Origin: Dimorphilus gyrociliatus
Taxonomy: Eukaryota; Animalia; Annelida
Assembly: GCA_904063045.1 (NCBI GenBank)
Contig: CAJFCJ010000004.1
Span: 2,349,713-2,413,712 of the forward strand
Length of the DNA: 64,000 nucleotides
Reading direction: 5' to 3'
Notes under the pieces: model-generated
What the model was told of the DNA's origin: nothing
Seen by the model: the letters and a program-made list of their open reading frames with translations, nothing else
Databases searched by the model: none
Position numbers and translations under genes: made by a program
Part shown: piece after piece, positions 19,453-42,800 of the stretch
Numbering within the stretch: the first letter of the stretch is position 1
Layout of the letters: every line of letters starts with the position of its first letter

Positions 19453-22400
19453 TTAATTTGTTTTTTTAATTGTTTTTATTTTGCGGCGGCGAATGATGTT
19501 TCTCCAATGTTTATGTACGCCTTTCCTATTAAATGTTACGTGTTCTGACTTTTTCACAATACTTCGATCTGGACAAATAAATCTTTTTCGTCGGCACGGG
19601 GATGTTGAATTATTAACAAATGTAAAAGCTTGACATCTTTTATCATTATAGCATTGTTTAGCACAATCAAATAAAGTATATTTAGCACTATTTGGAAAAG
19701 TACGTATCTTACATGAGCCATATTTAATGTCGAAATGCTTTTCTATTGAAAATTCTATCAAATTTTTAAAATAGAAGATGTAAATATAAAAGAAACGGAA
19801 ATATAGTTTAATAACGTACCAGACTCCTTTCTTATGTAAATATTGGTGTTAGAAGTTGGATTAATGGAGCAAGTTTTATAATATAATTTACAATTCATTG
19901 ATATAAGCGTGAACGTTACGCAATAAGCATTATTAAAACATGCTATTGCGCAATCTTCTATTGAGTTGGCATCTTCTATTAAATCTTTAACTGTATTGTT
20001 TGAACAAATTCCCTTTTTCTTATTAAAAAAAAAAGTTTGGGCTATATCTAAATAAATGAAAAATTTGATTAATTAAGAAGGTAAATTAATTAATAACAGT
20101 TTAATTTACTTAATTTGAGTTGTAATAATGTATAAGTTGGTTTTAAAGTAAAACTGTCAATTGAATAGTTTACGGTATTTAATCCATATTTCTTTATATC
20201 GTTTAATGACTTATGTAAAAGTAGGAAGGATTCTCTAAAACGAAAAGTAAAGGACTATAGTAGTTATAAAAGTAAACTGTTAGCAATTTACCTAAATCTA
20301 TTTGGTGGATTCCATTTATCTCTTTCATGAGTTATCATTGTATATTTAGCGAGAGGTTGAGGATATCTTGTAATGTTTAATTTATTTGCTCGTAGCCTTT
20401 TAAGGAATTAAATATTTTAATTCTCAATGAGAATTAGTATAATTATTTAAATTACCTTCCTAACATATCTTTATCTTCATCTCCCCAACCGTAAAATAAA
20501 ATATGAAAACCATTTATTGCTTTAAATTGTTCTTTTTTTATGGATAAAACACCACCAACGTGACATTGGCAGGGAAAAGTATAATTATACTTTTGAACTA
20601 ACGCTCCTAAATGTCGTGGAGCGTCGACACAATTGTACATGTGCCTTCCATCTTCGACAAACATATCAACGTCGTGAAATATTAAACAATCAAATTTGAA
20701 GATTTTATCAATTTCAATGAATGCTGCATTCATAATTGATCCTTTATTAAAGGTTTTAGGCGAAATTTGTTCAACAACAAATATTCTATAGTGAATTTTT
20801 TGACCTTTTAATACCCTATGCAGATGATTTAAAGATAGTTTCAAGTGTTCTTCCCTATCTCTATATGGAATAATAATGGCAACGGTTTCTAACGATTGAC
20901 AATTACTAGGTAAAAATTCACCGCCAGAAATTAAATTGCTAAAATAATTATTAATACTTTTCCAAGTGAGAGAATTCGTATTAATGTAAGGAGCAATTTC
21001 TTTCACTAAAAGTAATTAAAAGTATTATTTACAAGGAGTTTTTTTTAGTATGGAATTGATAATCTTTACTTGTGGAATCTGGTAAACATTCGCAAAACTT
21101 CTCCCTATCTCTTCTTAATTGCTTATTACAATTATATTTATATTCATTCAAAAATGTTTCAGTTTTATAGTTGCTCTCTAAAAGGACTGGACCTATATAA
21201 AATAAACAAATATTTCAATTGTTTATATTAATTAATTGAAAAATTAATTGAATTTTCGTTTGAATTCTATCTAATTTGCATTATTCTTGTTATCTCTAAA
21301 TACTAATTGTACCCTAAAATATATATATATATATACATTTATATACATATAATGTCATAATACTATAATATACAGTTATATGACTGTAAACAGTAAAGCA
21401 TTCCTCAAAAAGTATTTATATTAATGCATACACTTGATATTTTTATTAAACTGTACTTATTGAAGGATTTTCTTTTCCTCTCTTATTTATTTTTAACTTT
21501 AATAATTTACAGTCTTTCAAAACAAATACGGCTTTATCATAAATACCTTTTATCGCTATTAAATACGCTGAAAAAGATCTTTGAAGTTTGAGCTCGTAAA
21601 TCTAAATATAGAAAAGAGATGATTGACTAGTATTAATATTCGAATACTATATAAACATTAATTTTATCTCTACAGTATATGTAATAATATATACAGTACC
21701 GTTGTTCTTATTTTGACTGTTATTTACAGGATATTATATTTTTTAATGCCTTAATATTTTGTGTGCATACCCTTAGCTTTCTACAACTGCCCTAAGCCTT
21801 CTTTCCACTGTCTCATATAAGAATTAAATTTCCAATTCTGAAATTTTAAAAAATTCCTCTCTGAACATCTCCCGCAGCTCATCCTTGTTTCTTGGCTTAT
21901 GTGCCATTAAACATTTTTTGCATATGCCCCATATTTGCTCAATAATGTTCAGGTCTGGGCTGTTTGCTGGCCATGGATTCAGTGTTTCTACTCCCTTTCT
22001 CTCAAGGTATGCTTTTGTTCTGGCTGCTGTATGACAGCTAGCCCCATCCTGCTGGAAAATTTCCCCTGTCCTATAATTTGGGACAACATGACTGCTCAAA
22101 ATTTTGACATAATCTGAAGCTGTCATGCGATTAGGCACTAAAGCTAGGCCCCTATCTCCGTTAAACTTAATATAGCCAAACACCATGATATTCCCTCCCT
22201 CAAATTTTACTGTTTTTGTGGTATATTTGGGGTCGTTCCGTTTACCTGGTGGCCTCCTAACAAACTCCCTCCTCCTGGGATGCAGCTCAACCTTTGATTC
22301 ATCAGAAAAAATTACCTGCTTCACTGTTGTTAGAGAAAGAGATATAGGTATACCAGAATTATATAATACCTGATGGGCTGTCCACTTTGGGTTTGATTTA

Positions 22401-23057
22401 GATGCCCTGGTAATTTGCCTTTCCATCTTTGGTGTCACTTTTTTTGGTCTACCACTTCTTTGTTTATCTTTGACAGTTTTTAGCTCTTTAAATTTATTTT
22501 TTATGTTTTGTACAGTAGTTGGACTACATTTAAAAAGCTTTACCACTTTTCGAATAGACATTTCAGGTCTCTGAAGACAATTTAAGATAGAAATTCTTCT
22601 GGCTTCAGATAGCTTCACCATTTTTATTTTAAATTTGTCAACTGTTAGATTACACATGCGCACACACATAAATGACCTTAAAATCTGGTTAAAAGTGACA
22701 CTACTCAATGTTCAGGGTAAATTTTTTGAACATAACTGATGCTTGTGCTTTTCCATAAATAAGCCTATCAGATTAAAGTGATCATATTTCTGAGATTTTA
22801 AATGAAAAGTATATATTTTCTTTCTATAATGATAAGAAGAATATTATTAATTGTAATAATATCCTTCATTTTCATTCTTTAAGTACGAAAAGAGAAAAAA
22901 TCAAGAAAATATTATTTTTTTGAGGTGTAACAGTGACTTACCGCCGGTACTGTATATAATTCATTAATTATATTATACGAACCATTGTAATTAGGCCAAT
23001 TGCTGGCAGGATACAAAATAAGATATGCAGCTGTCGTTTTCTTGGCAGTTTTATCAT
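19453..23057 (-). CDS. GT7 glycosyltransferase fused to two PAN/Apple domains (paralog B)
   Basis: Exon 1 23057-22983 (MIKLPRKRQLHILFCILPAIGLITM, inferred from phase and similarity to paralog C), exon 2 21601-21547, exon 3 ~21192-21070, catalytic exon 21005-20456 (VAIIIPYRDR, FHDVD, GWGDEDKD), two more GT exons, then PAN exons ~20041-19820 and ~19754-19453. Confidence 0.85.
21694..22952 (-). mobile_element. Defective Tc1-like DD35E transposon in intron 1 of paralog B
   Basis: TA-flanked ends beginning CAGTACCG with an imperfect ~28-bp TIR. Transposase 22621-21751 has paired HTH, GRPKK, FSDES, FQQDGASCH and SPDLNIIE (35 residues between D and E). It has a ~50-aa in-frame deletion before FSDES, an in-frame TAA at 21824-26 and a +1 frameshift before AKGMHTKY*. 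Confidence 0.9.
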
Positions 23058-24622: not shown

Positions 24623-26755
24623 TTAATTCTTGACTTTCACTTCAGATTTTGGCAACGGTGTTGATTTATTTACTTTTGGATTTGAAGTAAAACATTTTTC
24701 TTTAAATTTTTCATCAACTACGCAATTTAATTTCTTCTTTATATAGACTTTACAATTTTTATTTTTCCTTCTTTTGGAGCATGGTGTAAGTTTTCCTAAA
24801 CAAGGTCTCTGAGATTTAGGATTATACGAAAATGATTTGCAAACTTTGGTTCTCAAGCATAATTTTGCGCAATCGTATAGTGTGTAGGCGGAGTTTTTGA
24901 ATACATTTCTTGAGAGACATTCCCCTTCTTCCTCTGTGAAGTATTGATGGAGAGGGTAGGCTAAATAGATGAAATATAGAAGAGTAAAGTAATCACATTC
25001 TATGTAATTAAACATAAAAAGTTAATAAACCTACCGGCCTCTTTACGATAATAAAAAACTTCTGGACTAATGCTATCCTCTGTGCATGTTTCATGATAAG
25101 TATTGCATACTGACTCGAGATAAGTGAATGATGTACATAAAGCGTCATGATAGCATTGCAATGAACAATCCTCTAACGAAGTAAGATTGGATAAAGTTAA
25201 AATGGGAGTAGCCTCATTGCAATATCCGTTGAACTGAGTAAACAGCTGATGGGCGGCAATTTCTATTTTTAACAAATGCATTTATTACTGAGCAAATCTT
25301 TCAATTTTTCTTGATTTACCTAAATTAACTTGAAAAAGGGTATAACTAATTTCAAACAGAATATTCTGGAGCGAATAATGTGTTGTCGTAAGACCTATTT
25401 TCTTTGAATAACCTCGACTAGGAGTATAAAAGTCAAGAATTGATTTCCTATTTAAGAATCAAATCGTCAATATCATAAATATCAAGGAAGTAAAATTTGA
25501 TTAGTTAATTAATTCATACCTGAAGGGATTAACCGGATTTGTTTTATCAGACTTATGCTTTAGCATTGTAAAAGCTGAGAGTGGATGCTTAAATCGAGTA
25601 ATTCTCATTCTAGAAGCTACGATCCTAAAAAAAAGGTACAGATTTATATAAATTAGTATATACTGTATGTAAGACAGAATTAAATAAGATTAAATCTATT
25701 AGAGGGTATTAATACCTCTTTTGCATATCGTCGTCTTCGTCTCCCCATCCATAAAATAACGTATTATAGCCATTTAGATGTTCAAAGTGACTTTTAGATA
25801 TAGCAAATACACCGCCAACATGAGCTAACCACCTATTTATATAATGAAATTTGTTCACGTATGGTCCAATATGTCTAGGTGTCTTTATGCAATTATACAT
25901 ATGACGACCGTCTTCCATAAGCATATCAACATCGTGGAATATGACGCAGTCAAATTGGAATAATTTCTGCATTTCCAAGTATCCAGCGTTCATTAGAGCA
26001 CCCTTGTTAAAGTCTCGAGGAGATATTTGTTCAGCAATAAATATTCTATAATGAATTTGTTGACCAGTAAGAATTTTATGTAAATGATGAACGAGAATCT
26101 TCAAATGCGAATCTCTCGCTCTATATGGTATAATAATGGCGACTCTTTGAAAAGAGACACAATTATTCGGTATCCACTCTCCTCCATATAAAATCCCTAA
26201 TTTTTTTTCATGTATATTGTGTATTGCACTCCAATTTTGAAATTGAACATTGTAATCCAAATAAGCTCTTTTTACTATAGAATAGAAAGGAGCTAAGATT
26301 AGAAACACTACTAATATATATCTAAAAGAGACTATCAATAAACTTCTTTAACCAGTTTACTTACAAGCTGTTTTTGGGACACATGCACAGTATTTTCCAG
26401 TTGATAATTTGCTTTTTTTTAACTCATTTCTACATATTTCATTATACTTTTGTACCATTAATGAAATAGCAGATTCCTTTTTTTGCGGCCAATGCTCGTC
26501 TATACAAAGGTAAAAAAAATGTCATGAACTTCATAAATAGATTCCGATCGTATTGTTCTTACCAAGGAGGATTTCATGTCTTTCTTCAACTGTGGAAACA
26601 GTTATAATTGTCTTGTTTACTGACTGAAAAATTATTTATAATAGAAATAGTAGCTGTTTATAAAAAGTAGTAGTCTTAAAACAAACTGATATGAAGAACA
26701 GGGTAGAGAAGATAAATGAGATGATGAAGAGTAATTTAACTTTAGTCTTTATCAT
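24623..26755 (-). CDS. GT7 glycosyltransferase fused to two PAN/Apple domains (paralog C)
   Basis: Exon 1 from ATG 26755 (MIKTKVKLLFIISFIFSTLFFIS), two stem exons, catalytic exon to 25716 (VAIIIPYRAR, FNKGALMNAG, FHDVD, GWGDEDDDM), two short GT exons, then PAN exons ~25261-25035 and ~24960-24623. Intron phases match paralogs A and B. Confidence 0.88.
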
Positions 26756-28111
26756 ATTTAATCTCTAAGCAATTGTAAGCAATGATGTATTCGTTGTCTT
26801 CGTAAAGGTTTTGTACAGACGATCGTTTCCATTCATTTATCTTTATTCTAAATTGATTTCCATTGAATTTTTTTACCATAAAACTAATTAAATGAGAAAA
26901 AAAAATAAAAAAGCATGTTTAAATAAACAATGTATGTTCTTCTTCTAACGTTTCCTTTAAACTACTGTATAGATAAACATTATACCGTTTCTACCTCTAC
27001 ATTGTACCATATCACTTGGCAAATCTTAACACAAGTGTTACAATAATCAAAGTTTCTATTGTAATACAATAAAAGTAACAATACTATTCTTTGCCAAAAA
27101 AAAAATTAAACATTATTTAGTCGGAATTCAAACTTTTATCCAGCAAATATTAGTTTAATTTTTATAATAAATGAATATTATATTTGTAATAATGAAAAAA
27201 CAATTAGAACAGTCTTTGGTAAAGACAGAACAAATTTACCTGTTAGAAATGCTTGTTTAAATCTGAAAAATGCCAGTGTTTTGAAGCTACAAGTTTGTCA
27301 TATTAATATTTACCTTCTTAGATCTAGTCAATACCTAATTATGATATCTTTAATGATAACTAATCGATGTGAGAAAAAAAACTGTAGCCAACTTTTCAAT
27401 GCTTCGCTTGCGCTACTCCTTTGTGACTAAAGGGCGCAGTCTTAAATAGTATTGAACCGCTTCGTATAGGGCATAGTTATAATATGGAAAACTTAAAAGC
27501 GGATAAAGTCTATTAAAAAGCTCAATTGTAAAAAGATAATGGGAATACTTTAGAATACAGTATGAAAAGGAGAAGTTAGTCATAATGCTAACGAAAATCA
27601 AACATATTTATATAGAAGGATAGTAATGCTTCGAAAGAATACTTTTAAAGAGTCACTTATAAATGTATATATAACTAACGAAAGCTTTCGTTCCAAGTTC
27701 AACATATATATTTTTTTAAAGCTTATACGTCTCCCTTTAACATGATAGAAGAAGAGCAATAGCATATACGTTATATATCACATTATATATATTTATACTG
27801 CATATATTATTCATATACATTTACTCAATCATCCCTATTTTAAATAACTATTGAAATTGGGTATATTAAAGTATACAAACATTTAATCAAGGCAATGCTC
27901 TTTTTGTAATGATTATATATTATACATATTATGTAGTAAGACGAGAATAATAGAGTATTTAAATTAGTCCAAGCATATAAACACAGATTGACAAATTTTA
28001 AAAAACAAAATATCATTGTTTTGCCTGATTAAATGTTATCACTTTCACAGTCTAATTAATATTTTATGTTCACGCATGCGTATATTAAAATATGCAGTAA
28101 AAAGTGCTAAA

Positions 28112-31100
28112 TTAATTAAATTGATGATACATTTCAAACTCTTCCATAAATTTTTTCTTAGCGATTTCATAGCACAGTCTATATTGATTCTGCAAGAGGA
28201 AACGGCGAGTTATTTAAAAGATATTTTTTCATAATTACAGTAAAGTATAAAGTTAATAATTTGTACCAGAATTTAGTTGTATATATACTGTATATATATA
28301 TAACATACCTGATTTCTAATAAATTCTCTCCTGTAATTTCTTAGATATTTTACTGTCGAGAATAGAGCAACTTCTGACAGTAACTTCATTCTTTCTATTA
28401 AACAATAAGCAGTACAAAATACTCCAGTGCGATCAACTCCATTTTTACAATGAACTATTATGGTGTTGCCACTCTCTCTCTCGGACGATCTATTCCAATT
28501 TTCAACTAGACTTACAAGCTTTTTTGATAAAAATTAATATAAAGTAATTAAATAAAGAGAAAATATTAAATATAACTTACTGTCAATAAACTGGTAGCTT
28601 TCTCTTGAATATCCAATGACCAAGTTTTTAACTGATATTGTTTAATCGTCCTAGTTTCGTTACCCTTGAAGTGTAATTTCGTTTAAAGCAATATATTATT
28701 AAGCATAGGCCTTGTATTATCTATAATCACCTTTCGTATGGATATTTCTCTTTGTACTATATTTTCAGCAATATTCTTTTTGGATGCTAGGATTATAACA
28801 AATTCATTTAATTTATGCTCCTCTTCCTCATTTTTAGGCCAATAAGGTTTCATCTTAATAAATGAAATTGGAATTAGAACAAGAACGATGCAAACATCTA
28901 ATAAAAAAAATTTACATCTGAAGTAATATCGTTAAGAGCAACAATTGTCGAGGATCTTTCCTTAAACACCATATTCCAAAAGTCATTTTCAGTATTTTGT
29001 AGTGGATGTTGTGTTGAAATAAATGCTATTTTAGTCTCAAAACTCTGAAAGGAATAATAGGAATACAATATTTAGAATTTAAGCCTTTTTCCTGGGAGAA
29101 CAAACGTTTATATAGACTGCATTGATGTAATTTTCTTCTGTATCTGTCAGGTATACTCTATACGCCGAAGCTGTTGAAAGACAATAATCATACAATGGTA
29201 GACTCAATACTATACTGTATATAAATAGAATACCTGGTAATAAGGCTTTATCTCTATTTTTCACAAGATTTTTTTCGTCTGTAGTAACGTCGTCATAAGA
29301 AGACTGAATTGTAAAATTTAAAGAATTTAAGAGTTTGAACTCTTTTCGAAGTGTCTCAGATTGAACTTTTAGGTGTTCGTATTTTGTGTGAAATTCTGCA
29401 TTGTCTATAAAGGTGCCACTTGTACAATATAATTCAACAACGGCCTTGTAAATAAACGTATACTGCTCCTGAGATGACAATAGAAAGTCAAATTAAAACT
29501 ATTTGTGATTTACTACGTTAGTTTACTTACAGCTGTTTGTACCATATTTACTCGTTCCCTTCTCATTTTTCGTACTACTTCAAACACATCTATTCGTTCT
29601 CCTTTCAACACTTTTTCTGCTAATTTACTAATCGCAATATATGTTCCAGTTCTGCCTACACCGGCGCTACAATGAACAACTACAGGAGCTGTCGAAGATG
29701 ATGTATTCAAGTCTACGATTTTCATAAAGAAAAGCAGGGAACTAGGGGAATTTAATGACGAATGATCCATCCACTCTTGATAATGATATTGTTTAATTTT
29801 TCGTGATTCTTCCTAAGAAAAAGGAATAAATGAATTAGTTAAAAAGAATAGAAACCATATTATTAAATATTTAAATAGAAACCAACTCCTTTTGTAACTG
29901 TGAAATGTCGAACTACAAAATCTGCGTACTGCTGCTCTTGTTCTAATTTTACCGAAATTTTAGCAAATACTAAAGTATCTGCATCCATACCAGGTAGTGC
30001 TTTAGGCCAATAGGCAGTTGTTTTTTTCTAAACAATTGATATTTTAAAAGGTTTAAAAGTTTAATGGATAAGATAAACAAACTTACGACTGCATTCTCTA
30101 CTAAATTTGTTAACATAACAATAGTTTCACAATTATTATCCCATATTAAACGCCAAAAGTGTTCAACGCTACTATCCGTCGGACCTTTTAGATTATAAAG
30201 TTAACTTATTGTTTAGAGTTAAGCGCAAAAATCTTTTTTTACCTTGTGCTGCTATGAATTTATTGTAACCAATATTATCCTGCATATTATATATGTAAAG
30301 TGTATACTCTATGTAAGAAATACCGTTTAACTTACCTTTAAGAATGAAGCATTATAAAAATCAGTTTCTTCATCTTTGGTAACAACTAGTTCAACTCTAT
30401 TATCGTCATCTTTGTTTTTTCAATTCACAAAGAAACAAGCCAACAAATAAAAGAATTACATTTCATTTAGGGAAAATGTCTATATATACAGTAGTCCGTA
30501 ATGGTTTTACTTACAAGGTAAAATGTTTATATACTTGAGATACTTTTTATTCTCTGGTGAACTTCCTACTATATGAGGTATATCTTCTTGCAAGTTTTTT
30601 GGCAATTTCTTAATAGTATTTGTACAAAAACAAATCGAAAAGAAAACAACCCTTTGTATATACAGCATATTCATATTAATATTTGTGTATAGTTACCCCA
30701 TGTTCTTCAATAAGCTCTTCCTTTCGCAACTTATCCTTCAACTCATTAATAAAACTTTCAATTACAAATGGTTCTATAACATTATAATAAATTTTTTCAC
30801 TAGATGGTTTAGGCGAATGCGTGTTCCCATCCGATTTGTTGCCTTTTTCTTTCAATTTCTTTTTTCTCTGATATCTATTATAAATAATTGTTTCAAATAT
30901 GTTTTTAACAGAGTCTTCTAAAGTAAAAAAATTGAGCAAATGCAAACATATGGAGTTAATTCGCCTACCTGATAAAAAGAAGAGCGAAAATAAAACAAAT
31001 AATAAAAAATCCACCAGCTCCGCAACCAGCATAAAGTTCAATTTTAGAAGGTTCTGCAACAAAAAAAACACAATCTATACAAACAACTCTTAATAGCAAT

Positions 31101-34100
31101 ACCCATATAAAAAAACAATCTACTATTGAAACACAAAGTTACTTGTATTCTATTATTGATAAGACTATAACAAAAAACAGGAAGGATTGATAACAAAATT
31201 TAAAAAAACATGAATTCTAATAAAATAAGTAAAACTAAAATCATCATTACCATTACCAATATTTTCATTTTCTGAAATTCATATCGACAAAATCAATATT
31301 TTTCAATCAATTGATTCAATTGAATAATTTACCTATACTGGATGTCTCTGGTCTTTCTAGATTTATATTAGGTGATTTCACTTGCTCACTAGAGTAATGT
31401 TCGTTCAGAGCTTCAACTGTGAAATAACCACTGACATTGATATTCAAAAACATTTCCGTAAAATTTTTTGTAATATCTTCAATTATCATTTCATTAACTT
31501 CACTTTTTCTATTCTCCACTTTAGAACTTACAACAACAAATGAGACTTGAACACCCAAATATTTATTACAATTATGTCCTCGGCTTCTTGGTTTCTGAAA
31601 ATCATACAATTAACCTTTAATGAATTCAAATACACAAAAAAAACTGGAATCATTTATATATGTCAAAATACATTCATACATTCCAAGTTATTGAATATAA
31701 CCATTTATTTCTTTCCGGACTGAATAGAACTTCTGTATACCTCAAACCAGTCAGCGAGTTTGGACCTATTCAATAAAAAAACAAATTTCATATTTACGTA
31801 CAAACAATTAATTACAAAGAAACCTACGTGAACACGGTGGTATTTCAACAGAAGATTCACTGCTCTTTCCAAGAGACACTGAACAATCTTCCAATTCATT
31901 TCTAACTCTAACTTCAACAGAAAGTATCTTAGTTTCATTTTTGTGTCTTATAAATTTGTCAACAGAAAGTGATGTATCATAAATTATAACATTTTCAAAT
32001 ATCAATGTGTCATTTCCCAAAGAGATTTCATAGCCCGCAAAAGCTTTAGTCTTTATTTTCGGATTTGAAAGGAAATTCCCCAAATTAATATGAACAGTGT
32101 TGTTTCCCTTATCAAATATTACATTATCTAACTTTCTTTCCAACAAACCTTAATTGCAATAAATTTAATTATTCATGTCATTCATCTATTATAAAAAATC
32201 GATATTACCAATAAAAACACATTTTCCATTTGATATTTCATAACCAATTTTGCATTGACAATATTCCAAATTCTCTGCTGAATAATTATAATTCTTATTA
32301 CAATGCAAAGGACACTGTGTGCATTTTGGAGGAATTCCGAATTCATTATCATTGCAATCTAAATTATTTCATTCAAATAAATTAATTCTCAATACAAAAC
32401 GATTTAAAAGTGAAACTACTTACAAATTCCTTTTCCTTTAACATAAACTTGACATAAATCTAAACTTCCATCATTACAACGAGTGTTTAAATAACATGTA
32501 TTATCCCTTTTCCTTATAACAATTCCTCTTGTGTTATTACGAGAAAACGGAACATTCACAGTAAACGCCGAACTATCCATCATTGAACCAGTAAAATTAT
32601 ATATTGTTTTAAGGCGTAAGAACTGGATATTATTTGCATCTTCAATTCGATAATCATATGGAACAAGAGAGATGTCAAAGTTTCGTAATCTTCCACCTTT
32701 TTGAATAAAATGTGATAGAAAAAGGAAGTTACATCAATGTGAAAAAAACCTGATTCTGGAATGCTGATTATTTGAATTGTGCTTATTTCATACACATTTT
32801 TCAAATCGAGATACCAAATTCCAAGATGTGTTCTATTACCTGTTGATGTATATGATTTTGAACAGTTAATAGTATCTTTAATTGCTTCATTTGCTATCTT
32901 GTCTGCTATTCCATTACGATAGGCTTTTCCGTTAATCGCAATATTGTCTTCTGTAAAGAAAACAGATGAAAATCAATGAAATGGCAGGTTGTTTCAATGT
33001 AAAGTGTTATTATTACCGCAATTTTTCCAACAAATACAAATGTTGTGGTTCATTGTGTTTGTATTGTAACATTTGTAATTATCAACACAATTACAAGATT
33101 CTGTGTAATAAGTTCTTTTTTTATTAATTCATTATTTTGTAATAGGTAAATGTAATTACTTTCAACTTTTTCGCCCTTAATCACTAAATTACAGAATTGA
33201 AATACTTGTGTTTTCGAATTCAAAGTGATGAATCTTCCAATTACATTATTTCTCTTTACTTTACAATCAAAATAATGTGAAAATATTCCGCCTTTCGGTA
33301 TTGTTTTAGAATTTCTAAAAGTATAATCATTTTGATACGCATTTGTTTGCCAGATGTTGGGCAGATTCGCAGAATCATCATGAATGAAAATATCAAAGGA
33401 ACCCAAACTATATTTGTTTCCATTAAAAATAGCTAAATGATGAATTTTGTAATAATTTTGAAGATCAACTCTCCATATTTCACCAAATTCTGTCAAAGAT
33501 TCACTGCATTGAAAAAGTGGATGGGTAACCGGAATTTTACTGATTGTGTCATCATTCGAAACAACCTGCGTTGGTTTATTGGCAGCAATACTATTATCTG
33601 TATTGAAGAAAGACGAGTTTACAGCTTGAATGCATAGTAAAGAAGATTTCATAAAAATATTAACATGGTCGAAATCCTTCAACTATTACTTCAGCAATTA
33701 TCAATTCTCCTCCGTCCTTTTGAGAAGGATCAGCTACTTTCTGATATCTTTCAATTGCTATATATTTTGATATTTTAGAAATTACATTATTTGTATATAT
33801 CTCAGCAAATGATTTATTTTTAATGACATAATCTATATCTCCAACTGGTATGTAGTTTGTGTGTTCTGTTAAATCGTCAGCAACTGATGTAGAATTTTGT
33901 ACAGTAAAAACTTTTAAATATGATAATCTTTTGCCTGAAAATGAAAGGAAAACGATTTCGATAATAATTTAGGTTAAATATGTGAAATTTGTATGAAAAA
34001 CAATGAAATATTTTATTACTTCTTTCTTTTTGCTGATTCAGTATTAATATTCTTGAGATTATAGCATTGTATGATAACTCAATTCTTATTCTTCCGTATT

Positions 34101-34519
34101 TATCAGTGGATTTTGTATGAGCATGTTGAGAGAAATTCCCATCTACAGCCCTGCCAGCAAATTGTGTTTTATGTGTTCCCTGATATTGTTTTGCATTTCC
34201 ATTTAATGCCATATTATCTATATGATTAGAATTAGGTAATGTTGAAGTAGATGATATGACGTTTAGAATGACTGAATATATAATGAATGTATTACCAATA
34301 TCACAACAGGGTCCAAGTTTTGCATTCAAACAAAATTCTTCATTATTTTGACCATTTTTTGCGTATTGTACTGGATATTGACCTAATCGAGAAGACATAT
34401 TTATTGTATATAAGAACGTTTGTGATGTTATTACCTTTTTGAGTGAGAATTGAAAGATTTAACATTTGCAATATATAGACAGTATAAAGGAATGTCGACT
34501 TAACCAAATAGTTTACCAT
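28112..34519 (-). CDS. Receptor-type protein tyrosine phosphatase: signal peptide, 3 F-type-lectin-like (FTP/discoidin) domains, EGF-like, 2 FN3-like, TM, tandem PTP D1-D2
   Basis: ATG 34519 ([20 protein letters not shown]). FTP-like [10 protein letters not shown]...AVDGN...HT...[10 protein letters not shown]; WRVDL; WYLDL...[10 protein letters not shown] exon 31053-30969 ([23 protein letters not shown]). D1: [37 protein letters not shown]2: [19 protein letters not shown]. Stop at 28112. Confidence 0.9.
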
Positions 34520-34520
34520 T
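31195..34520 (-). repeat. Left arm of a ~3.3-kb inverted duplication (~98% identity)
   Basis: Its reverse complement matches 36206-39530 across exons and introns; the paired ORFs in the track are near-identical. Confidence 0.97.
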
Positions 34521-36205
34521 GCCTTTTATTGATTGTGAAGATCTGTTTGGTAATATATGTAGTCTTGTTGAATAAATTCGTGATTTTTTTGTCAGGGAAT
34601 CTTAAGTGTCGATGAATTACACTGTACATGCTGTTAGTTTACTATTATTGTTCTTTGAACTTTTGATAGTGTTAGTATTTGTTGAATGATATTTATGATG
34701 TCAAAATGAATTGTTGTGATTTTGTTTTATAGAATATTTTGATAATTGCTTCACATATTTGTCTAGAGATGGTAGTATATTTTGTAATTAATTAGGTCTT
34801 GTACCTTTTTATAATTTGTAAACGAACTGATATGTTATATTAAAATTGCGACGAAGAAGGAAGTAAATTCAATCACAATGCAATTTTTAGTATTGATGCC
34901 AAGTAGTATGTCTAACTAAATAGCATACGTGTATTGAAAAGTGTGTTTAACAGGTAGTTTTAAGACTGTGGTTACGGCTGTAATCATTTTTTAATTATTT
35001 TTATGTATTTAACGATGAAAAGAATGAAGAAAATTGTGCTAAAAGGAAGGCTGTGAAAAAATTTATATTGTATTTTACCTACTAACCTTGCTAATCTGAT
35101 TTAACGTTTTGATTATTAAGATTTATCCGTATACATCACTAAAATGTAACGTTTTATTAATATTTCTTCAGTCTATCAAACTTTTGGCGTAGAAAGAAAC
35201 GATTGAAAGGAGTTTTATTTCAACTGTTCATTTTGGTTATAATAAAGTATATATTGGCCAGAAAAACTATTCATAAGCAAATAGCAAATAGTTTTCCTCA
35301 ACTAGAAATAGGAAGTTAATTTTCAATACGACTATTCTATTTATATTTTTATCACGAATTGAGAATATAAGGGAATTTTTTCATTGTGCTATACATTCTC
35401 ATCGTTACAGGTTGGTATTTTATATAGGAAATCTCGTATTTTTCATTCAACTAGATTATCCTTTTCTAACGATATACGTAATATAAAAAGCCTATATGTA
35501 TTTTAAATAACTGTTTAAAACGTTAATTCAGATAGTGTTTTAATATTTATTGTCATGGATGTACCTTTAAAATAGTCCTTATAAAAAAAAACAGTCGGCT
35601 AGACGGAACATTTGTTTCAGCACTGTATATATCAATTTAGATATTCATAAATACTGTATATATTTAGATATGCAATACAAACACCATTAACCCTCTTTTT
35701 CGCTTATACAGAAAGGGAAGCATAAAGACAGTAGTCAGAGTTGTTTACTATGGTCTACAATAAACTTTAGTTCATTATAATATAATTTCAAAATGCTAAA
35801 AATATGTATATAAAGATAAGTAACTGAAATTGTAGGTCAATAGAAAATTTACACAAATATAAATTTATATAGATAATAGCAAGGGAAGCAGTTCTTTAAT
35901 GTTGGCTACAAAAGAAAGGCTTAAACGAAAAATGTATAGGAGAGTTGTGATATATATCTATGTATTTCATATTAACACTTGGTCACAATGAAAGAAAAGC
36001 AAATAGTTAACAACTATTTTTAAAAGTTCTATTACTGCATACAGCAAGGAACTTATCACTTTTTCTTATGACATAAAAAATATGTTTATAAAATTAACAG
36101 AGAATACCAGAGATAATTTTAAGAAATCAAAGGATAAGAAAAAATAACTTGTGTATTTTTTAAACTATTGTTTCAATAGCAGATCCTTAAAGTCTAATAA
36201 TCAAA
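34521..36205. promoter_or_regulatory. Unique 1.7-kb spacer between the divergent start codons; presumed bidirectional promoter region
   Basis: Lies between ATG 34519 (-) and ATG 36207 (+), with no ORF. The promoter role is inferred from position only. Confidence 0.5.
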
Positions 36206-39200
36206 AATGGTAAACTATAAGGTTAAGTCAACATTCATTTACACTGTCTATATATTGCAAATGTTAAATCTTTCAATTCTCACTCAAAAAGGTAATAACA
36301 TCACTAACGTTCTTATATACAATATATATGTCTTCTCGATTAGGTCAATATCCAGTACAATACGCAATAAATCGTCAAAATAATGAAGAATTTTGTTTGA
36401 ATGCAAAACTTGGACCCTGTTGTGATATTGGTAATACATTCTTTATATATTCAGTCATTCTAAACGTCATATCATCTACTTCAACATTACCTAATTCTAA
36501 TCATATAGATAATATGGCATTAAATGGAAATGCAAAACAATATCAGGGAACACAAAAAACACAATTTGCTGGCAGGGCTGTAGATGGGAATTTCTCTCAA
36601 CATGCTCATACAACCTCCACTGGTAAATACGGAAGAATAAGAATTGAGTTACCATACAATGCTATAATCTCAAGAATATTAATACTGAATCAGCAAAAAG
36701 AAAGAAGTAATAAAATATTTCATTGTTTTTCATACAAATTTCACATATTTAACCTAAATTATTATCGAAATCGTTTTCCTTTCATTTTCAGGCAAAAGAT
36801 TATCATATTTAAAAGTTTTTACTGTACAAAATTCTACATCAGTTGCTGCAGATTTAACAAAACACACAAACTACATACCAGTTGGAGATATAGATTATGT
36901 CATTAACAATAAATCATTTGCTGAGATATATACAAATAATGTAATTTCTAAAATATCAAAATATATAGCAATTGAAAGATATCAGAAAGTAGCTGATCCT
37001 TCTCAAAAGGACGGAGGAGAATTGATAATTGCTGAAGTAATAGTTGAAGGATTTCGACCATGTTAATATTTTTATGAAATCTTCTTTACTATGCATTCAA
37101 TCTGTAAACTCGTCTTTCTTCAATACAGATAATAGTATTGCTGCCAATAAACCAACGCAGGTTGTTTCGAATGATGACACAATCAGTAAAATTCCGGTTA
37201 CCCATCCACTTTTTCAATGCAGTGAATCTTTGACAGAATTTGGTAAAATATGGAGAGTTGATCTTCAAAATTATTACAAAATTCATCATTTAGCTATTTT
37301 TAATGGAAACAAATATAGTTTGGGTTCCTTTGATATTTTCATTCATGATGATTCTGCGAATCTGCCCAACATCTGGCAAACAAATGCGTATCAAAATGAT
37401 TATACTTTTAGAAATTCTAAAACAATACCGAAAGGCGGAATATTTTCACATTATTTTGATTGTAAAGTAAAGAGAAATAATGTAATTGGAAGATTCATCA
37501 CTTTGAATTCGACATCACAAGTATTTCAATTCTGTAATTTAGTGATTAAGGGCGAAAAAGTTGAAAGTAATTACATTTACCTATTACAAAATAATGAATT
37601 AATAAAAAAAGAACTTATTACACAGATTCTTGTAATTGTGTTGATAATTACAAATGTTACAATACAAACACAATGAACCACAACATTTGTATTTGTTGGA
37701 AAAATTGCAGTAATAATAACACATTACATTGAAATAACCTGCCACTTAATTGATTATCATCTGTTTTCTTTACAGAAGACAATATTGCGATTAACGGAAA
37801 AGCCTATCGTGATGGAATAGCAGACAAGATAGCAAATGAAGCAATTAAAGATACTATTAACTGTTCAAAATCATATACATCAACAGGTAATAGAACACAT
37901 CTTGGAATTTGGTATCTCGATTTGAAAAATGTGTATGAAATAAGCACAATTCAAATAATCAGCATTCCAGAATCAGGTTTTCTTCACATTGATGTAACTT
38001 CCTTTTTCTATCACATTTTATTCAAAAAGGTGGAAGATTACGAAACTTTGACATCTCTCTTGTTCCATATGATTATCGAATTGAAGATGCAAATAATATC
38101 CAGTTCTTACGCCTTAAAACAATATATAATTTTACTGGTTCAATGATGGATAGTTCGGCGTTTACTGTGAATGTTCCGTTTTCTAGTAATAACACAAGAG
38201 GAATTGTTATAAGGAAAAGGGACAATAAATGTTATTTAAACATTCGTTGTAGTGATGGAAGTTTAGATTTATGTCAAGTTTATGTTAAAGGAAAAGGAAT
38301 TTGTAAGTAGTTTCACTTTTAAATCGTTTTGTATTGAGAATTAATTTATTTGAATGAAATAATTTAGATTGCAATGATAATGAATTCGGAATTCCTCCAA
38401 AATGCACACAGTGTCCTTTGCATTGTAATAAGAATTATAATTATTCAGCAGAGAATTTGGAATATTGTCAATGCAAAATTGGTTATGAAATATCAAATGG
38501 AAAATGTGTTTTTATTGGTAATATCGATTTTTTATAATAGATGAATGACATGAATAATTAAATTTATTGCAATTAAGGTTTGTTGGAAAGAAATTTGGAT
38601 AATGTAATATTTGATAAGGAAAACAACACTGTTCATATTAATTTGGCGAATTTCCTTTCAAATCCGAAAATAAAGACTAAAGCTTTTGCGGGCTATGAAA
38701 TCTCTTTGGGAAATGACACATTGATATTTGAAAATGTTATAATTTATGATACATCACTTTTCGTTGACAAATTTATAAGACACAAAAATGAAACTAAGAT
38801 ACTTTCTGTAGAAATTAGAGTTAGAAATGAATTGGAAGATTGTTCAGTGTCTCTTGGAAAGAGCAGTGAATCTTCTGTTGAAATACCACCGTGTTCACGT
38901 AGGTTTCTTTGTAATTAATTGTTTGTACGTAAATATGAAATTTGTTTTTTTATTGAATAGGTCCAAACTCGCTGACTGGTTTGAGGTATACAGAAGTTCT
39001 ATTCAGTCCGGAAAGAAATAAATGGTTATATTCAATAACTTGGAATGTATGAATGTATTTTGACGCATATAAATGATCCGAGTTTTTTTTGTGTATTTGA
39101 ATTCATTAAAGGTTAATTGTATGATTTTCAGAAACCAAGAAGCCGAGGACATAATTGTAATAAATATTTGGGTGTTCAAGTCTCATTTGTTGTTGTAAGT

Positions 39201-39530
39201 TCTAAAGTGGAGAATAGAAAAAGTGAAGTTAATCAAATGATAATTGAAGATATTACAAAAAATTTTACGGAAATGTTTTTGAATATCAATGTCAGTGGTT
39301 ATTTCACAGTTGAAGCTCTGAACGAACATTACTCTAGTGAGCAAGTGAAATCACCTAATATAAATCTAGAAAGACCAGAGACATCCAGTATAGGTAAATT
39401 ATTCAATTGAATCAATTGATTGAAACATATTGATTTTGTCGATATGAATTTCAGAAAATGAAAGTGATAATGATAATTATGATTTTAGTCTTACTTCTTT
39501 TATTAGAATTGATGTTTTATATAATTTTGT
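36206..39530 (+). repeat. Right arm of the ~3.3-kb inverted duplication
   Basis: See left arm; similarity ends in the intron before the TM exon. Confidence 0.97.
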
Positions 39531-39846
39531 TTAATGACAGATTCTTCAAAGTCTATTCCTTTTTGGCCTTTCATTGTTGGCGGTGTTGTTATTTTATTGG
39601 TTGTAGTGACTATTGCATTTATTTACTTCTGTTATAGGTTAGTATGATTAGATTATATTGGCAGTTATTGATAATTAAGTGTTTTAAAGAGTACATAAAA
39701 AAGTCGTTAATGAGCGAAAGGAAGAATTACCATCGCAAAACGAATATGTTAACAATGTAGAGGAAAATACTTATTGCGAAGTGAAAGAAAAGCCATTTTA
39801 TGTCAATTTAATTCATTTAAAATGTTTTAAAAAAAACAATGAGTAG
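36207..39846 (+). CDS. Non-catalytic single-pass receptor with the same ectodomain as the RPTP but a different TM and a 52-aa Tyr-motif tail
   Basis: ATG 36207; ectodomain exons parallel the PTP gene; 9-nt microexon 39455-39463; TM exon 39541-39637 (SIPFWPFIVGGVVILLVVVTIAFIYFCYR); last exon 39690-39846 (VHKKVVNERKEELPSQNEYVNNVEENTYCEVKEKPFYVNLIHLKCFKKNNE*). All junctions are phase-compatible GT-AG. Confidence 0.85.
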
Positions 39847-42800
39847 TAATATTAAATGAAAATAGAATTGGATATTAATGTCATTGCTTTTCATTTAGTC
39901 TTTTACTTGAAACAATTTTCATTGTGTTATTTTCTTTAAAGAGACTTTATTTCTTGAAGATAAGAGATTACTACTCAAAATGCAACTGTTATTTGTCAAA
40001 AATCATATCTTTTACTTTTTTTGTCTGTTCATAATTTAAATGTTATTTACTAATCAGCTTTTTTCCTCTTAATTATTGTTCTTGCAGTAACTGTTCTGTG
40101 ATATGCAAATATTTCTGCATTTAACTAATCTTTTGAAATGTAACTTATCCCTTCACAATAAACAATCTTACTATTCATATCAGGCATATTGCGAGCGAAA
40201 CTGTAAATAAAAAGTTTTATTACTCATTATTGACCTAATAGAAGTGGAATCTGAATAATGACATTCTCGTTTAATCTAAGGGATCTTTTCAGTGGACAAC
40301 TTTATCACCCTACTTTTATTGATATAATAAACCTCCCCCAACTCATTTTCTGGTATTTTCTATATCTGTACGTACTTCTAACAGCAGTTATGTCAATTCG
40401 ATTAATTGCGTGTAGAGGAGACTTAAGACCGTTTTCAGACGCTTTGCGATCTTTATAACCATTAGACTATAATCATCAGAAGGATTGTTAAGTGGAAAAT
40501 TTTGAATTGATGCGGTGTTTCCCTTCACTCTATCAAAGCGTTCTGTAGTCATCAAATCATACCACATCTCATTCAGAATATTCAGCCTCCTCACAAGCTT
40601 AGTACCAAATAAGGATTTTATGTTACTCCCCGGTGGCAGGCAGTACTCATTTGTGAAGCGGTCAAGTTAAATCCTTCTGCCTATCCAAATCCATGGTTTC
40701 TCGTTGCAGATTGAGAGTTGTAGAACATTCGTTTATGATGTCCAAACTTTTTTGACTGTATCTAACAGTTATGGATTATTTAGTTTAATATATGAGATTA
40801 TGAACTTTCTCCCAATATCATAATAAAGAATCAGAAAGGCTCAAAAATGTTTACTATTTTATTAGCTTCTCTCTGTTTCTTTTGGCCGTAAACGAATATA
40901 TATCGTTAGGTGTTGGATAGCATAAAGACCCACATATAATCCCTATCCAAGTGACTCGTCACTATAAACTCTGTAATAATACACTAAAGGGCTACTCTGC
41001 TAATACGAAATATAATACAAATATAGACGTTTCTATGTTTTTAATAAACAGTAAAAGTATAAGAAAAGGTAATATTTTTGTAATCTATACAATAAATATA
41101 CAGTAAAGGTAACATAAAGAAAGGGAAAAATAAGAAACGTTTATGCTTTTATCTATAATAAATTGTTACGAAAATAGTCGCTCCCTTAATGACTTTTTTT
41201 TTTATCTTCTTCCCTAAATTAGTTATTGATCATCTTTACGTTGGAAATATTCGATTTAATCGATTTTTTCATCTTTCAACTAATCAATAAAAAACCTATA
41301 GGCCTAAAAAATAAACAAGAACATAAGACACTTACTCCAATTTTTCAATTTTAATCCTAATGATATTGTTTTAATTGGCAATAAAATATAATATTATCTG
41401 AGAGATGGCGCCACCAATTTGGGAAATAACAGACGTTTAACCAAGTAAGATCAAAGAAGTTTCCATAGGCGGTGTGAGAAATATTTTGATAATCTTTTTA
41501 GAATCTTTTCAGCATAGTATTAAAGAGACTTTAATAAGATAATCCAGATTTCTTCAGAATAAAGAGAAGGAAGCTGGATAGAAAGATATATAACTGTATA
41601 TTGAGGAAGGAGAAGATTGAAAGAAGGAAAAAAAAGAGACAAGTCTGAAAAATCAACGTAGGCGTATAAAGCTGCCGGGAGACCGACAATTTTGACACTA
41701 AATGATAGATCATTTAAGAGAGAAAAACTAAAGATATCGAATTGATATATCAACGTCGAATACAAGTTGCTTAACAATTTATACGTATATTACCTGAGAT
41801 ACTCGAAAAAAGGACCATTTTCTATAAGAATCCTTAAATCAATTATAGGACAAGTATATAGAGAATAAAGAGAAAGAAAAGGCTTATTTTACACGTTTTT
41901 TACGACTAAAAAAGATGTTGGTTAAAGCTAATAAAAATTTATTGAAGAAATGTTTAAAAAATGTTTCTTTATAGATTTCTATATAATTTCATCTATTTCT
42001 GCGTCTCTTTCCTCAATTTGGCTGCTTTTCCTGTCTTTTTTTTCACACTTGTAAAGTCGTTTATGATGGATTGGCGATAAAGAATAAAACAAGCCAACTT
42101 CTTTTAGTTGTAAAGAGAAAACTTATACGACAACCAATTTTCTATACAAAATCACGAGTCATGAAAAACCTTCAGAAATATCCTTTTAAAAAGATCTCAT
42201 TATAACTTTGATTGTACAGTTTTCATAGGCAAGAGTATATACATATATAAATGTATTATACATAGATTATATATACAGTATGTGTTTAGTCTATCTATAT
42301 GTATTTCTACAATATAAATACGTACTGTATATTGGGATGGACTGGTATTGATATTTTTACTTCTTAGGCTTCTTTCCTAACTTGGCAATATGTTCAAAAA
42401 ATAGGCCACTAGCTTCATTAGTTTCAACTCCTTAAAAAGACCGATTACTATGTTTATTGAACTGTACCCGAGAGCTTATTATTATTATTCTGGAAAGTCG
42501 AACGTTACAGTTTTCTTCTTCTCGTTTGTCAACGACCCATTTATCTAGTAGGAGACGGATTTAATGATTTTTTCTTCCCTCTTCAAAAATTCGTTAATTG
42601 CACTTGAAAAACGAAATGAAAAGGGAAAGATAGCAAAACATTTTCTTCTATAGCAAATAACTTTTCTCTATTTTAATGTTACGTAACAAAAATTGATAAA
42701 ACTGTTTAGTTATTTCTATTAAATTTGTTCTTTTTTTAATCCTTTTCATTCATTGATTCGTTCATTCATCCATCTATTCATTTATTCTTTCTTTCTTTCT

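Follow-up and report, generated by a model that had tools for sequence, protein, structure and literature searches.

A head-to-head pair of Dimorphilus gyrociliatus receptor genes with near-identical FTP-like ectodomains, one continuing into a tandem tyrosine phosphatase and the other into a short tyrosine-containing tail

We analysed 64,000 nucleotides (nt) of the tiny marine annelid Dimorphilus gyrociliatus (assembly GCA_904063045.1, contig CAJFCJ010000004.1; hereafter the window, whose positions serve as coordinates throughout), a stretch of AT-rich eukaryotic DNA (G+C content of ~0.28) that contains two receptor genes arranged head to head. An exact protein match led to the same source. 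The locus measures 12 kb in total, with 1.7 kb separating the genes, and is organized around the one large inverted repeat of the window. Repeat search and arm comparison placed the left arm at 31243 to 34520 (- strand; from the start codon to the intron preceding the transmembrane [TM] exon) and the right arm at 36206 to 39483 (+ strand). The arms are 3278 nt long, ungapped, and 98% complementary, with a 1685-nt spacer between them; a gapped blastn alignment widens the repeat to 34589-31192 versus 36139-39531, at 97.3% identity. The identity tract spans the sequence from the ATG to the intron preceding the TM exon, similarity decaying within ~50 nt at the 3' border and ~30 to 70 nt at the 5' border, and the TM and cytoplasmic parts of the two genes are not alike. 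We are highly confident that the two genes lie head to head, that they have in common a module of 3.3 to 3.4 kb, introns included, that is 97 to 98% identical, and that both are transcribed and correctly spliced. An initial annotation made from the sequence alone had proposed two intact divergent genes with a ~98% identical ectodomain module, each with a TM exon of its own and a different cytoplasmic part (a tandem protein tyrosine phosphatase [PTP] or a short tyrosine-containing tail). Both proposals were borne out, the first by the repeat, the open reading frames (ORFs), and the transcripts.

The + strand gene, or short member (coding sequence at 36207 to 39846), encodes a 902-amino-acid (aa) type I receptor in 14 coding exons, a model defined by RNA joints and an intact ORF. 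Three whole-animal RNA runs, each containing the mRNAs of both genes, were used: X2, dated 2017, which carries an older species label and comes from a study other than that of the genome, and X3 and X4, which come from the same study as the genome and whose contigs skip all introns, although their run type was guessed by software as "DNA?". The 13 introns are all GT..AG, and every joint was found in contigs of X2, X3, and X4 except 38517|38578, which was found in X3 and X4 only. The TM exon (39541 to 39637; 97 nt, phase 1 to 2, joints in three runs) starts with D-S-S-K-S-I-P-F-W. The tail exon (39690 to 39846) encodes a basic stop-transfer stretch followed by EYVNN, TYCEV, FYVNL, and the stop codon TAG at 39844 to 39846. 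Its translation gives a 52-aa tail with three tyrosines, the number that had been read from the sequence. The initial annotation had allowed that this gene might be untranscribed or not spliced to 39541 and 39690; the joints 39393|39541 and 39637|39690 are both present in X2, X3, and X4, that is, in three runs from two studies. Additionally, one 1490-nt X3 contig connects the final exons of the ectodomain with the TM exon, tail, and 3' untranslated region (UTR), reaching 40171 with 0 mismatches to the + copy. The 3' UTR occupies 39847 to 40196, with AATAAA at 40157 and RNA contigs terminating at 40155 to 40196. A tblastn search of the window with the cytoplasmic part of the - strand gene found no PTP remnants downstream of the + strand gene. 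When the short protein was searched against solved structures, its TM segment (S-I-P-F-W ... T-I-A-F-I) matched the CD28 TM peptide 7vu5 with an E value of 0.74, a match that is not significant and is probably compositional.

The - strand gene, or long member (28112 to 34519), mirrors 12 arm exons and then continues into its own TM, juxtamembrane, and tandem phosphatase exons, ending at 28112. Its exon model, for which RNA joints were combined with depth arithmetic, gives a receptor-type tyrosine phosphatase of ~1462 aa, with PF00102 matches on the exons of both phosphatase domains (D1 and D2). From the N-terminus, the protein comprises a signal peptide-like segment, three FTP-like domains, Cys-rich/EGF-like exons, two beta-rich modules, the TM segment, a juxtamembrane segment, PTP D1, and PTP D2. 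Each of the two proteins has one strongly hydrophobic TM segment, at ~residue 830 in the long member, and a moderately hydrophobic N-terminus. The exons specific to the long member, all on the - strand, are the TM exon (30969 to 31053; 85 nt, phase 1 to 2), the juxtamembrane exon (30697 to 30874; X4 depth bins match the exon length), which carries an IYYNV motif, the PTP D1 exons with NILPYD and the WMD loop (29531 to 30608), and the exons for the D1 C-terminus, the interdomain linker, and PTP D2 with KNRD (28112 to 29468), the stop codon ending at 28112. PTP contigs of X2 and X4, read together with length arithmetic, extend through the long-member TM exon into the last shared exon. In the last intron of this gene, a TA-rich simple repeat (28278 to 28302) produces a depth spike of 890 and spurious long-range joints (28302->30288, 30331, and 32205) in the DNA run X1.

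Between the last shared exon and the TM exon of the long member, we infer a 21-nt in-frame micro-exon (31271-31251, - strand), because depth in the bin 31100-31299 corresponds to 21 nt in both X2 (13.3/126.4 x 200) and X4 (4.62/44 x 200) and because both PTP contigs reach 50 nt (21 + 29) past the TM exon. AG and GTAATG splice signals are present at this element and the frame is kept; the micro-exon would add E-N-E-N-I-G-N ahead of the TM exon and lengthen the protein from 1455 to 1462 aa. The element appears to be unused in the + copy, where the opposite segment (39455-39478) contains the densest cluster of differences between the arms (39464-39478) and has its donor removed. The identity tract therefore effectively ends within the micro-exon element.

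The two genes start close together. X2 contains 5' UTR joints from the spacer into each arm, 35087->34542 (CT..AC, hence on the - strand) and 35408->36178 (GT..AG, cut +2), and these joints are copy specific because the sequences immediately upstream of the two ATGs differ between the copies. One X2 contig covers exactly 35087-35410, a central 324-bp segment that contains both 5' UTR first exons and has outward donors at 35087 (-) and 35410 (+). The first exons must therefore either overlap on opposite strands or have their starts separated by less than 324 bp, which makes this segment a compact divergent promoter and a candidate shared bidirectional promoter. At 38594-38647, X2 RNA contains the variants of both copies (74/174 depth). 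As a separate observation on the spacer, X2 and X3 RNA contigs break at 35033 and 35664 and continue with sequence that is found on neither strand of the window; these positions are not canonical splice sites, and the breaks could stem from another copy of a repeat, from an insertion polymorphism, or from contig chimerism.

A near-perfect inverted repeat in a long-read assembly could be an artefact, either because a haplotype was misplaced as the inverted copy or because chimeric long reads formed a palindrome, and mis-assembly of the inversion had been named from the outset as an outcome that would undo the finding. The 2% divergence between the arms could be allelic, and the assembly was built from PacBio RS II/PBcR data with HaploMerger2 (PMC7854359). 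DNA run X1, on which part of the check depends, may come from the same sample as the assembly. Nevertheless, k-mer depth in X1 was ~420 to 860 in the arms versus ~160 to 290 in the spacer and outer flanks (i.e., arms at ~2x), and each of the four arm borders is crossed by X1 contigs (34454-35269, 35249-36272, 39434 onward, and 27900-31292). The 1.7-kb spacer, which is unique sequence, connects with both arms. RNA from a different study (X2) splices the spacer into each arm with a copy-specific 5' UTR, and the same arm end is followed by two different sequences in both DNA and RNA. There was also no sign of flipped-spacer isomers, the loose contig ends matching the window on neither strand. Such a pattern of depth, junctions, and splices cannot be produced by a misplaced haplotype or a hairpin chimera, and we consider an artefact extremely improbable.

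The shared ectodomain had been labeled as a signal peptide followed by three FTP, one EGF, and two FN3 domains and described as lectin-like. The three FTP-like domains held up: PF22633 matches the full short protein at 35.3 bits (cutoff, 27.8) over two stretches, and each of the three domains can be aligned with canonical FTP repeats, core motif included. The EGF label stands by eye only, the exon fitting C-x-C-x2-G-Y-x6-C and having no supporting Pfam match. The FN3 label could not be confirmed, as the two membrane-proximal modules had no Pfam match at E=1 or E=10; the only leads were weak ones from the Atlas (fn3-bearing clusters at 0.76 to 0.78), and a single-sequence AlphaFold2 model of the membrane-proximal 278 aa was unusable (pLDDT of 33). 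The fucose-binding motif of canonical F-type lectins is H-x26-R-x-D-x4-R/K. In FTP1 the His is retained, as is the second basic residue, but NQQK stands in place of NRxD; FTP2 reads CSES and NGNK, and FTP3 reads CSKS and SIPE. With the triad absent from the three domains, "lectin-like" describes the fold, for which the family match argues, and not a demonstrated sugar specificity. The domains thus resemble F-type lectin and FTP proteins (fucolectins and pentraxin-fusion proteins) in belonging to the PF22633 fold family and in the core motif, but differ from F-type lectins in being membrane anchored, in being coupled to phosphotyrosine signaling parts, and in having a missing or incomplete triad.

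The phosphatase half of the long member appears conventional. D1 matches PF00102 at 6.3e-27 and has all of the classical catalytic motifs: an intact C(X)5R P-loop, an Asp loop that reads WMD (Pro replaced by Met, Asp kept), the Q loop QTAEQY, and KY before INILPYD. D2 is a second PF00102 domain with KNRD and with degenerate motifs, as is usual, and the two are in tandem after a single TM segment. The closest solved structures to D1 are those of PTPRE (5.9e-34), PTPRA, PTPRS, LAR, and CD45. Accordingly, the long member resembles classical tandem receptor PTPs (PTPepsilon/PTPalpha, LAR/PTPsigma, and CD45) in its single TM segment, C(X)5R D1, Asp of the WPD-type loop, Q loop, and degenerate D2. 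It differs from them in that WPD is WMD and KNRY is KYLKY in D1 and in its three-FTP-like ectodomain, which was found on no other phosphatase in the searches run. Receptor PTPs also have phosphatase-less isoforms (e.g., the secreted or short forms of PTPRZ), which a single gene produces through alternative splicing or processing. The Dimorphilus pair is like these forms in presenting one ectodomain with and without a phosphatase, but it consists of two oppositely oriented genes that do not share a TM exon or 3' end.

The tyrosines of the short-member tail are of the YxN type, a Grb2-SH2-like motif, and the phosphatase member also carries one (IYYNV). A YxN site is likewise present in RPTPalpha, whose pY789 binds GRB2 (PMC7021549), although the Dimorphilus site is juxtamembrane and not C-terminal. 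The tail lacks (I/V/L/S)xYxx(I/V/L), position -2 being N, N, and P at the three tyrosines, and YCEV and YVNL are spaced by 5 residues instead of the 6 to 8 of the motif associated with activating adaptors (the immunoreceptor tyrosine-based activation motif, ITAM). Across the short-member tail, the juxtamembrane segment of the long member, and the tail of a distant relative (L005, described below), YxN motifs are enriched (5 observed; p=0.005). Comparisons of the tail or TM segment of the + gene with the juxtamembrane or TM segment of the - gene gave no significant homology (p=0.06 to 0.36).

Relatives of the family are few. The exon encoding FTP2 had 17 matches among 1.8 billion representative proteins, indicating a small, lineage-restricted family. 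Among distant relatives, phmmer placed multi-FTP lectins nearest, including a Xenopus protein that bears a fucolectin annotation, and none of the distant FTP matches carries a PTP domain. The closest matches are Logan contigs L002-L010 of an AT-rich eukaryote (G+C content of 0.23 to 0.28; runs SRR23372215/16/28/29/31 and SRR31984831/34), which are 27 to 34% identical and represent at least 3 paralogues. One of them, the 5-kb genomic contig L005, contains a whole family member whose ectodomain is of the family type but has only two FTP domains, the third being absent. The phases of its TM exon and the split Arg codon agree with those of the Dimorphilus member, and its 67-aa tail contains YQNL, YYYN, and YDDL before the stop; the next 1.1 kb contains no phosphatase exon. 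Scored against the TM exon of the short member, the L005 TM exon reached 47 versus 24.8 +/- 4.9 for shuffles (p=0.0005), whereas it shows no resemblance to the TM exon of the long member. The description of the short-member TM exon as unrelated thus needs to be divided: it is unrelated to that of its partner (p=0.16 between the two TM exons) but has a homologue in the TM exon of the short-tailed L005 member. A profile of the last ectodomain exon recovered the L005 ORF alone. A candidate phosphatase-bearing family member in the relative was rejected, as the best match to the D1 exons (44% identity) came from an unrelated run without family exons.

The two ectodomain copies are intact over 818 codons in both arms and identical at 791/818 aa (27 aa differences). 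Differences affect 36/2455 exon sites (1.5%) and 24/823 intron sites (2.9%), nine of the latter at the 3' border. Among the differing codons, 27 are nonsynonymous and 5 synonymous, and the NG86 method gives nonsynonymous and synonymous rates (dN and dS) of 0.0150 and 0.0142, respectively, i.e., a dN/dS ratio (omega) of ~1; values of omega of <=0.3 and <=0.5 were rejected at p=3e-4 and p=0.02. All cysteines are kept in both copies (26/26), and 14/15 N-glycosylation sequons are shared. The differences are mildly clustered (coefficient of variation of 1.30 versus 0.96; p=0.015). Since copying, then, the ectodomains have diverged at a neutral-like or diversifying rate while both remained intact.

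The presence in L005 of a similar TM exon and a YxN tail at ~30% identity suggests that the short-tailed architecture is old, and the phosphatase half, a classical tandem PTP, is evidently old too. If both 3' ends are old, the shared ectodomain would have been imposed recently on two older 3' halves, and we infer that the module was copied recently between two pre-existing neighbours. Introns and exons are similarly close, the borders are sharp, and the differences are mildly clustered. As the route, gene conversion between inverted paralogues and a single recent inverted segmental replacement would fit equally well. The same divergence data bear on the view that the pair is a young neutral chimera, in which conversion or duplication between inverted neighbours overwrote one 5' half and the products have no joint function, one ectodomain or the whole short gene being left to drift. 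A dN/dS of ~1 with omega of <=0.3 rejected (p=3e-4), intron and exon divergence of the same order, and the small, lineage-restricted family (17 matches among 1.8 billion representatives) are all compatible with it. However, both ORFs are intact over the 818 shared codons with every cysteine kept, both genes are spliced and present in three RNA runs, and the short-tailed form, with its YxN tail and a TM exon of similar sequence, recurs in a ~30% identical relative and so has been long maintained. On this evidence, we consider a neutral chimera unlikely.

These observations suggest a possible mechanism in which the two receptors would be co-expressed from the shared bidirectional promoter and would bind the same ligand through their matched ectodomains. 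The short member could be phosphorylated on its YxN tyrosines and recruit a Grb2/Drk-type SH2 adaptor, while the long member would place a phosphatase at the same patch of ligand. Activation of Src-family kinases is common among tandem-domain receptor PTPs, CD45 and RPTPalpha included, and the phosphatase might either erase the YxN signal or prime such kinases. The outcome would be a two-output sensor resembling paired receptors. We hold this mechanism (co-expression, the same ligand, and YxN adaptor docking versus phosphatase) as plausible, if tentative. A "dampening versus activating" polarity would be an assumption, as the phosphatase may dampen or prime the signal, and opposite signaling and an immune or self-recognition role are likewise conjectural.

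Alternatively, the short member might have no signaling of its own and act as a decoy, a ligand sink, or a heterodimer partner that tunes the dimerization or activity of the phosphatase member. Dimerization can control how active receptor PTPs are, and near-identical ectodomains, the common 324-bp start region, and the presence of both mRNAs in the same RNA samples would suit such a partner. Against this stand the open tail with its YxN motifs, which recur in the relative and which a pure decoy would not need, and the different TM exons, which argue against TM-driven pairing; we rate this explanation as rather improbable. The two-output mechanism itself has several points to its disadvantage. 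Tail-to-tail sequence homology is not significant, the relative is just 27 to 34% identical, and the YxN enrichment in the short-member tail alone reaches p=0.054. There is no ITIM (immunoreceptor tyrosine-based inhibitory motif), no canonical ITAM, and no charged residue in either TM segment, and alignment shows the canonical His/Arg/Arg fucose triad to be missing or incomplete in 3/3 FTP-like domains. A dN/dS of ~1 also fits relaxed constraint and is neutral-like, not demonstrably adaptive. Logan contigs merge variants, and neither allele-specific nor quantitative expression can be read from them; the case as a whole is built on sequence and transcripts.

Paired receptors with a common ectodomain, opposite tails, and matching by gene conversion are regarded as a hallmark of vertebrate immune clusters. 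They are defined by homologous ectodomains, overlapping expression, and opposite signaling (PMC5701461), and in the Dimorphilus pair homology is indeed confined to the extracellular domains (791/818 aa). Judged by gene architecture, the pair is paired-receptor-like, and it is an analogue and not a member of the ITIM/ITAM motif class. The parallel that had been drawn with SIGLEC11/SIGLEC16 of primates is real: those genes lie head to head, ~9 kb apart, with ~3 kb homogenized by gene conversion (PMC5701461). Both systems consist of head-to-head neighbours with a highly similar N-terminal ectodomain region of ~3 kb, differing cytoplasmic parts, and an ectodomain from a lectin-type family. They differ in that the Dimorphilus spacer is 1.7 kb and not ~9 kb, with the first exons within one 324-bp segment; the long member has its own tandem PTP in place of SHP-recruiting ITIMs; the short member has its own YxN tyrosines in place of a charged TM residue and an ITAM adaptor; and the ectodomain is FTP-like and not of the immunoglobulin type.

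A literature search returned no paper on the pair, on a phosphatase-containing paired receptor, or on any such annelid pair. If both proteins act on the same ligand, paired-receptor logic would be convergent outside vertebrates and could be built without ITIM/SHP recruitment. The fullest version of this proposal, an independently evolved invertebrate paired-receptor system in which a phosphatase member and a pYxN docking receptor, driven by one bidirectional promoter, would have their ectodomains matched by recurrent conversion while diversifying, for microbe, glycan, or self recognition, is speculative, and we think it doubtful. The compact locus, in a small-genome laboratory animal, is suited to work on chimeric receptors and on the part that conversion between inverted neighbours plays in their origin or upkeep.

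In the public annotation the genes are uncharacterized entries with erroneous models, for which the RNA evidence supplies the corrections. The + strand gene is represented by DgyrCDS3153 (786 aa) and DgyrCDS3154 (844 aa), both of which omit 58 aa encoded by exon 6 and by the latter half of exon 7, so that the FTP3 core is lost, and DgyrCDS3153 runs into an intron in place of the TM exon. The - strand gene has been joined to a neighbouring GT7 glycosyltransferase, giving a 1919-aa product. Two beta-1,4-galactosyltransferase-like (GT7) exons lie on the - strand at 20452-21006 and 25709-26338, and between the two GT7 genes a 294-aa open frame (21824-22708, - strand) looks, by eye, like a Tc1/mariner-type transposase. 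Cys-rich PAN/Apple-like ORFs (24623-25281) follow the GT7 exons.

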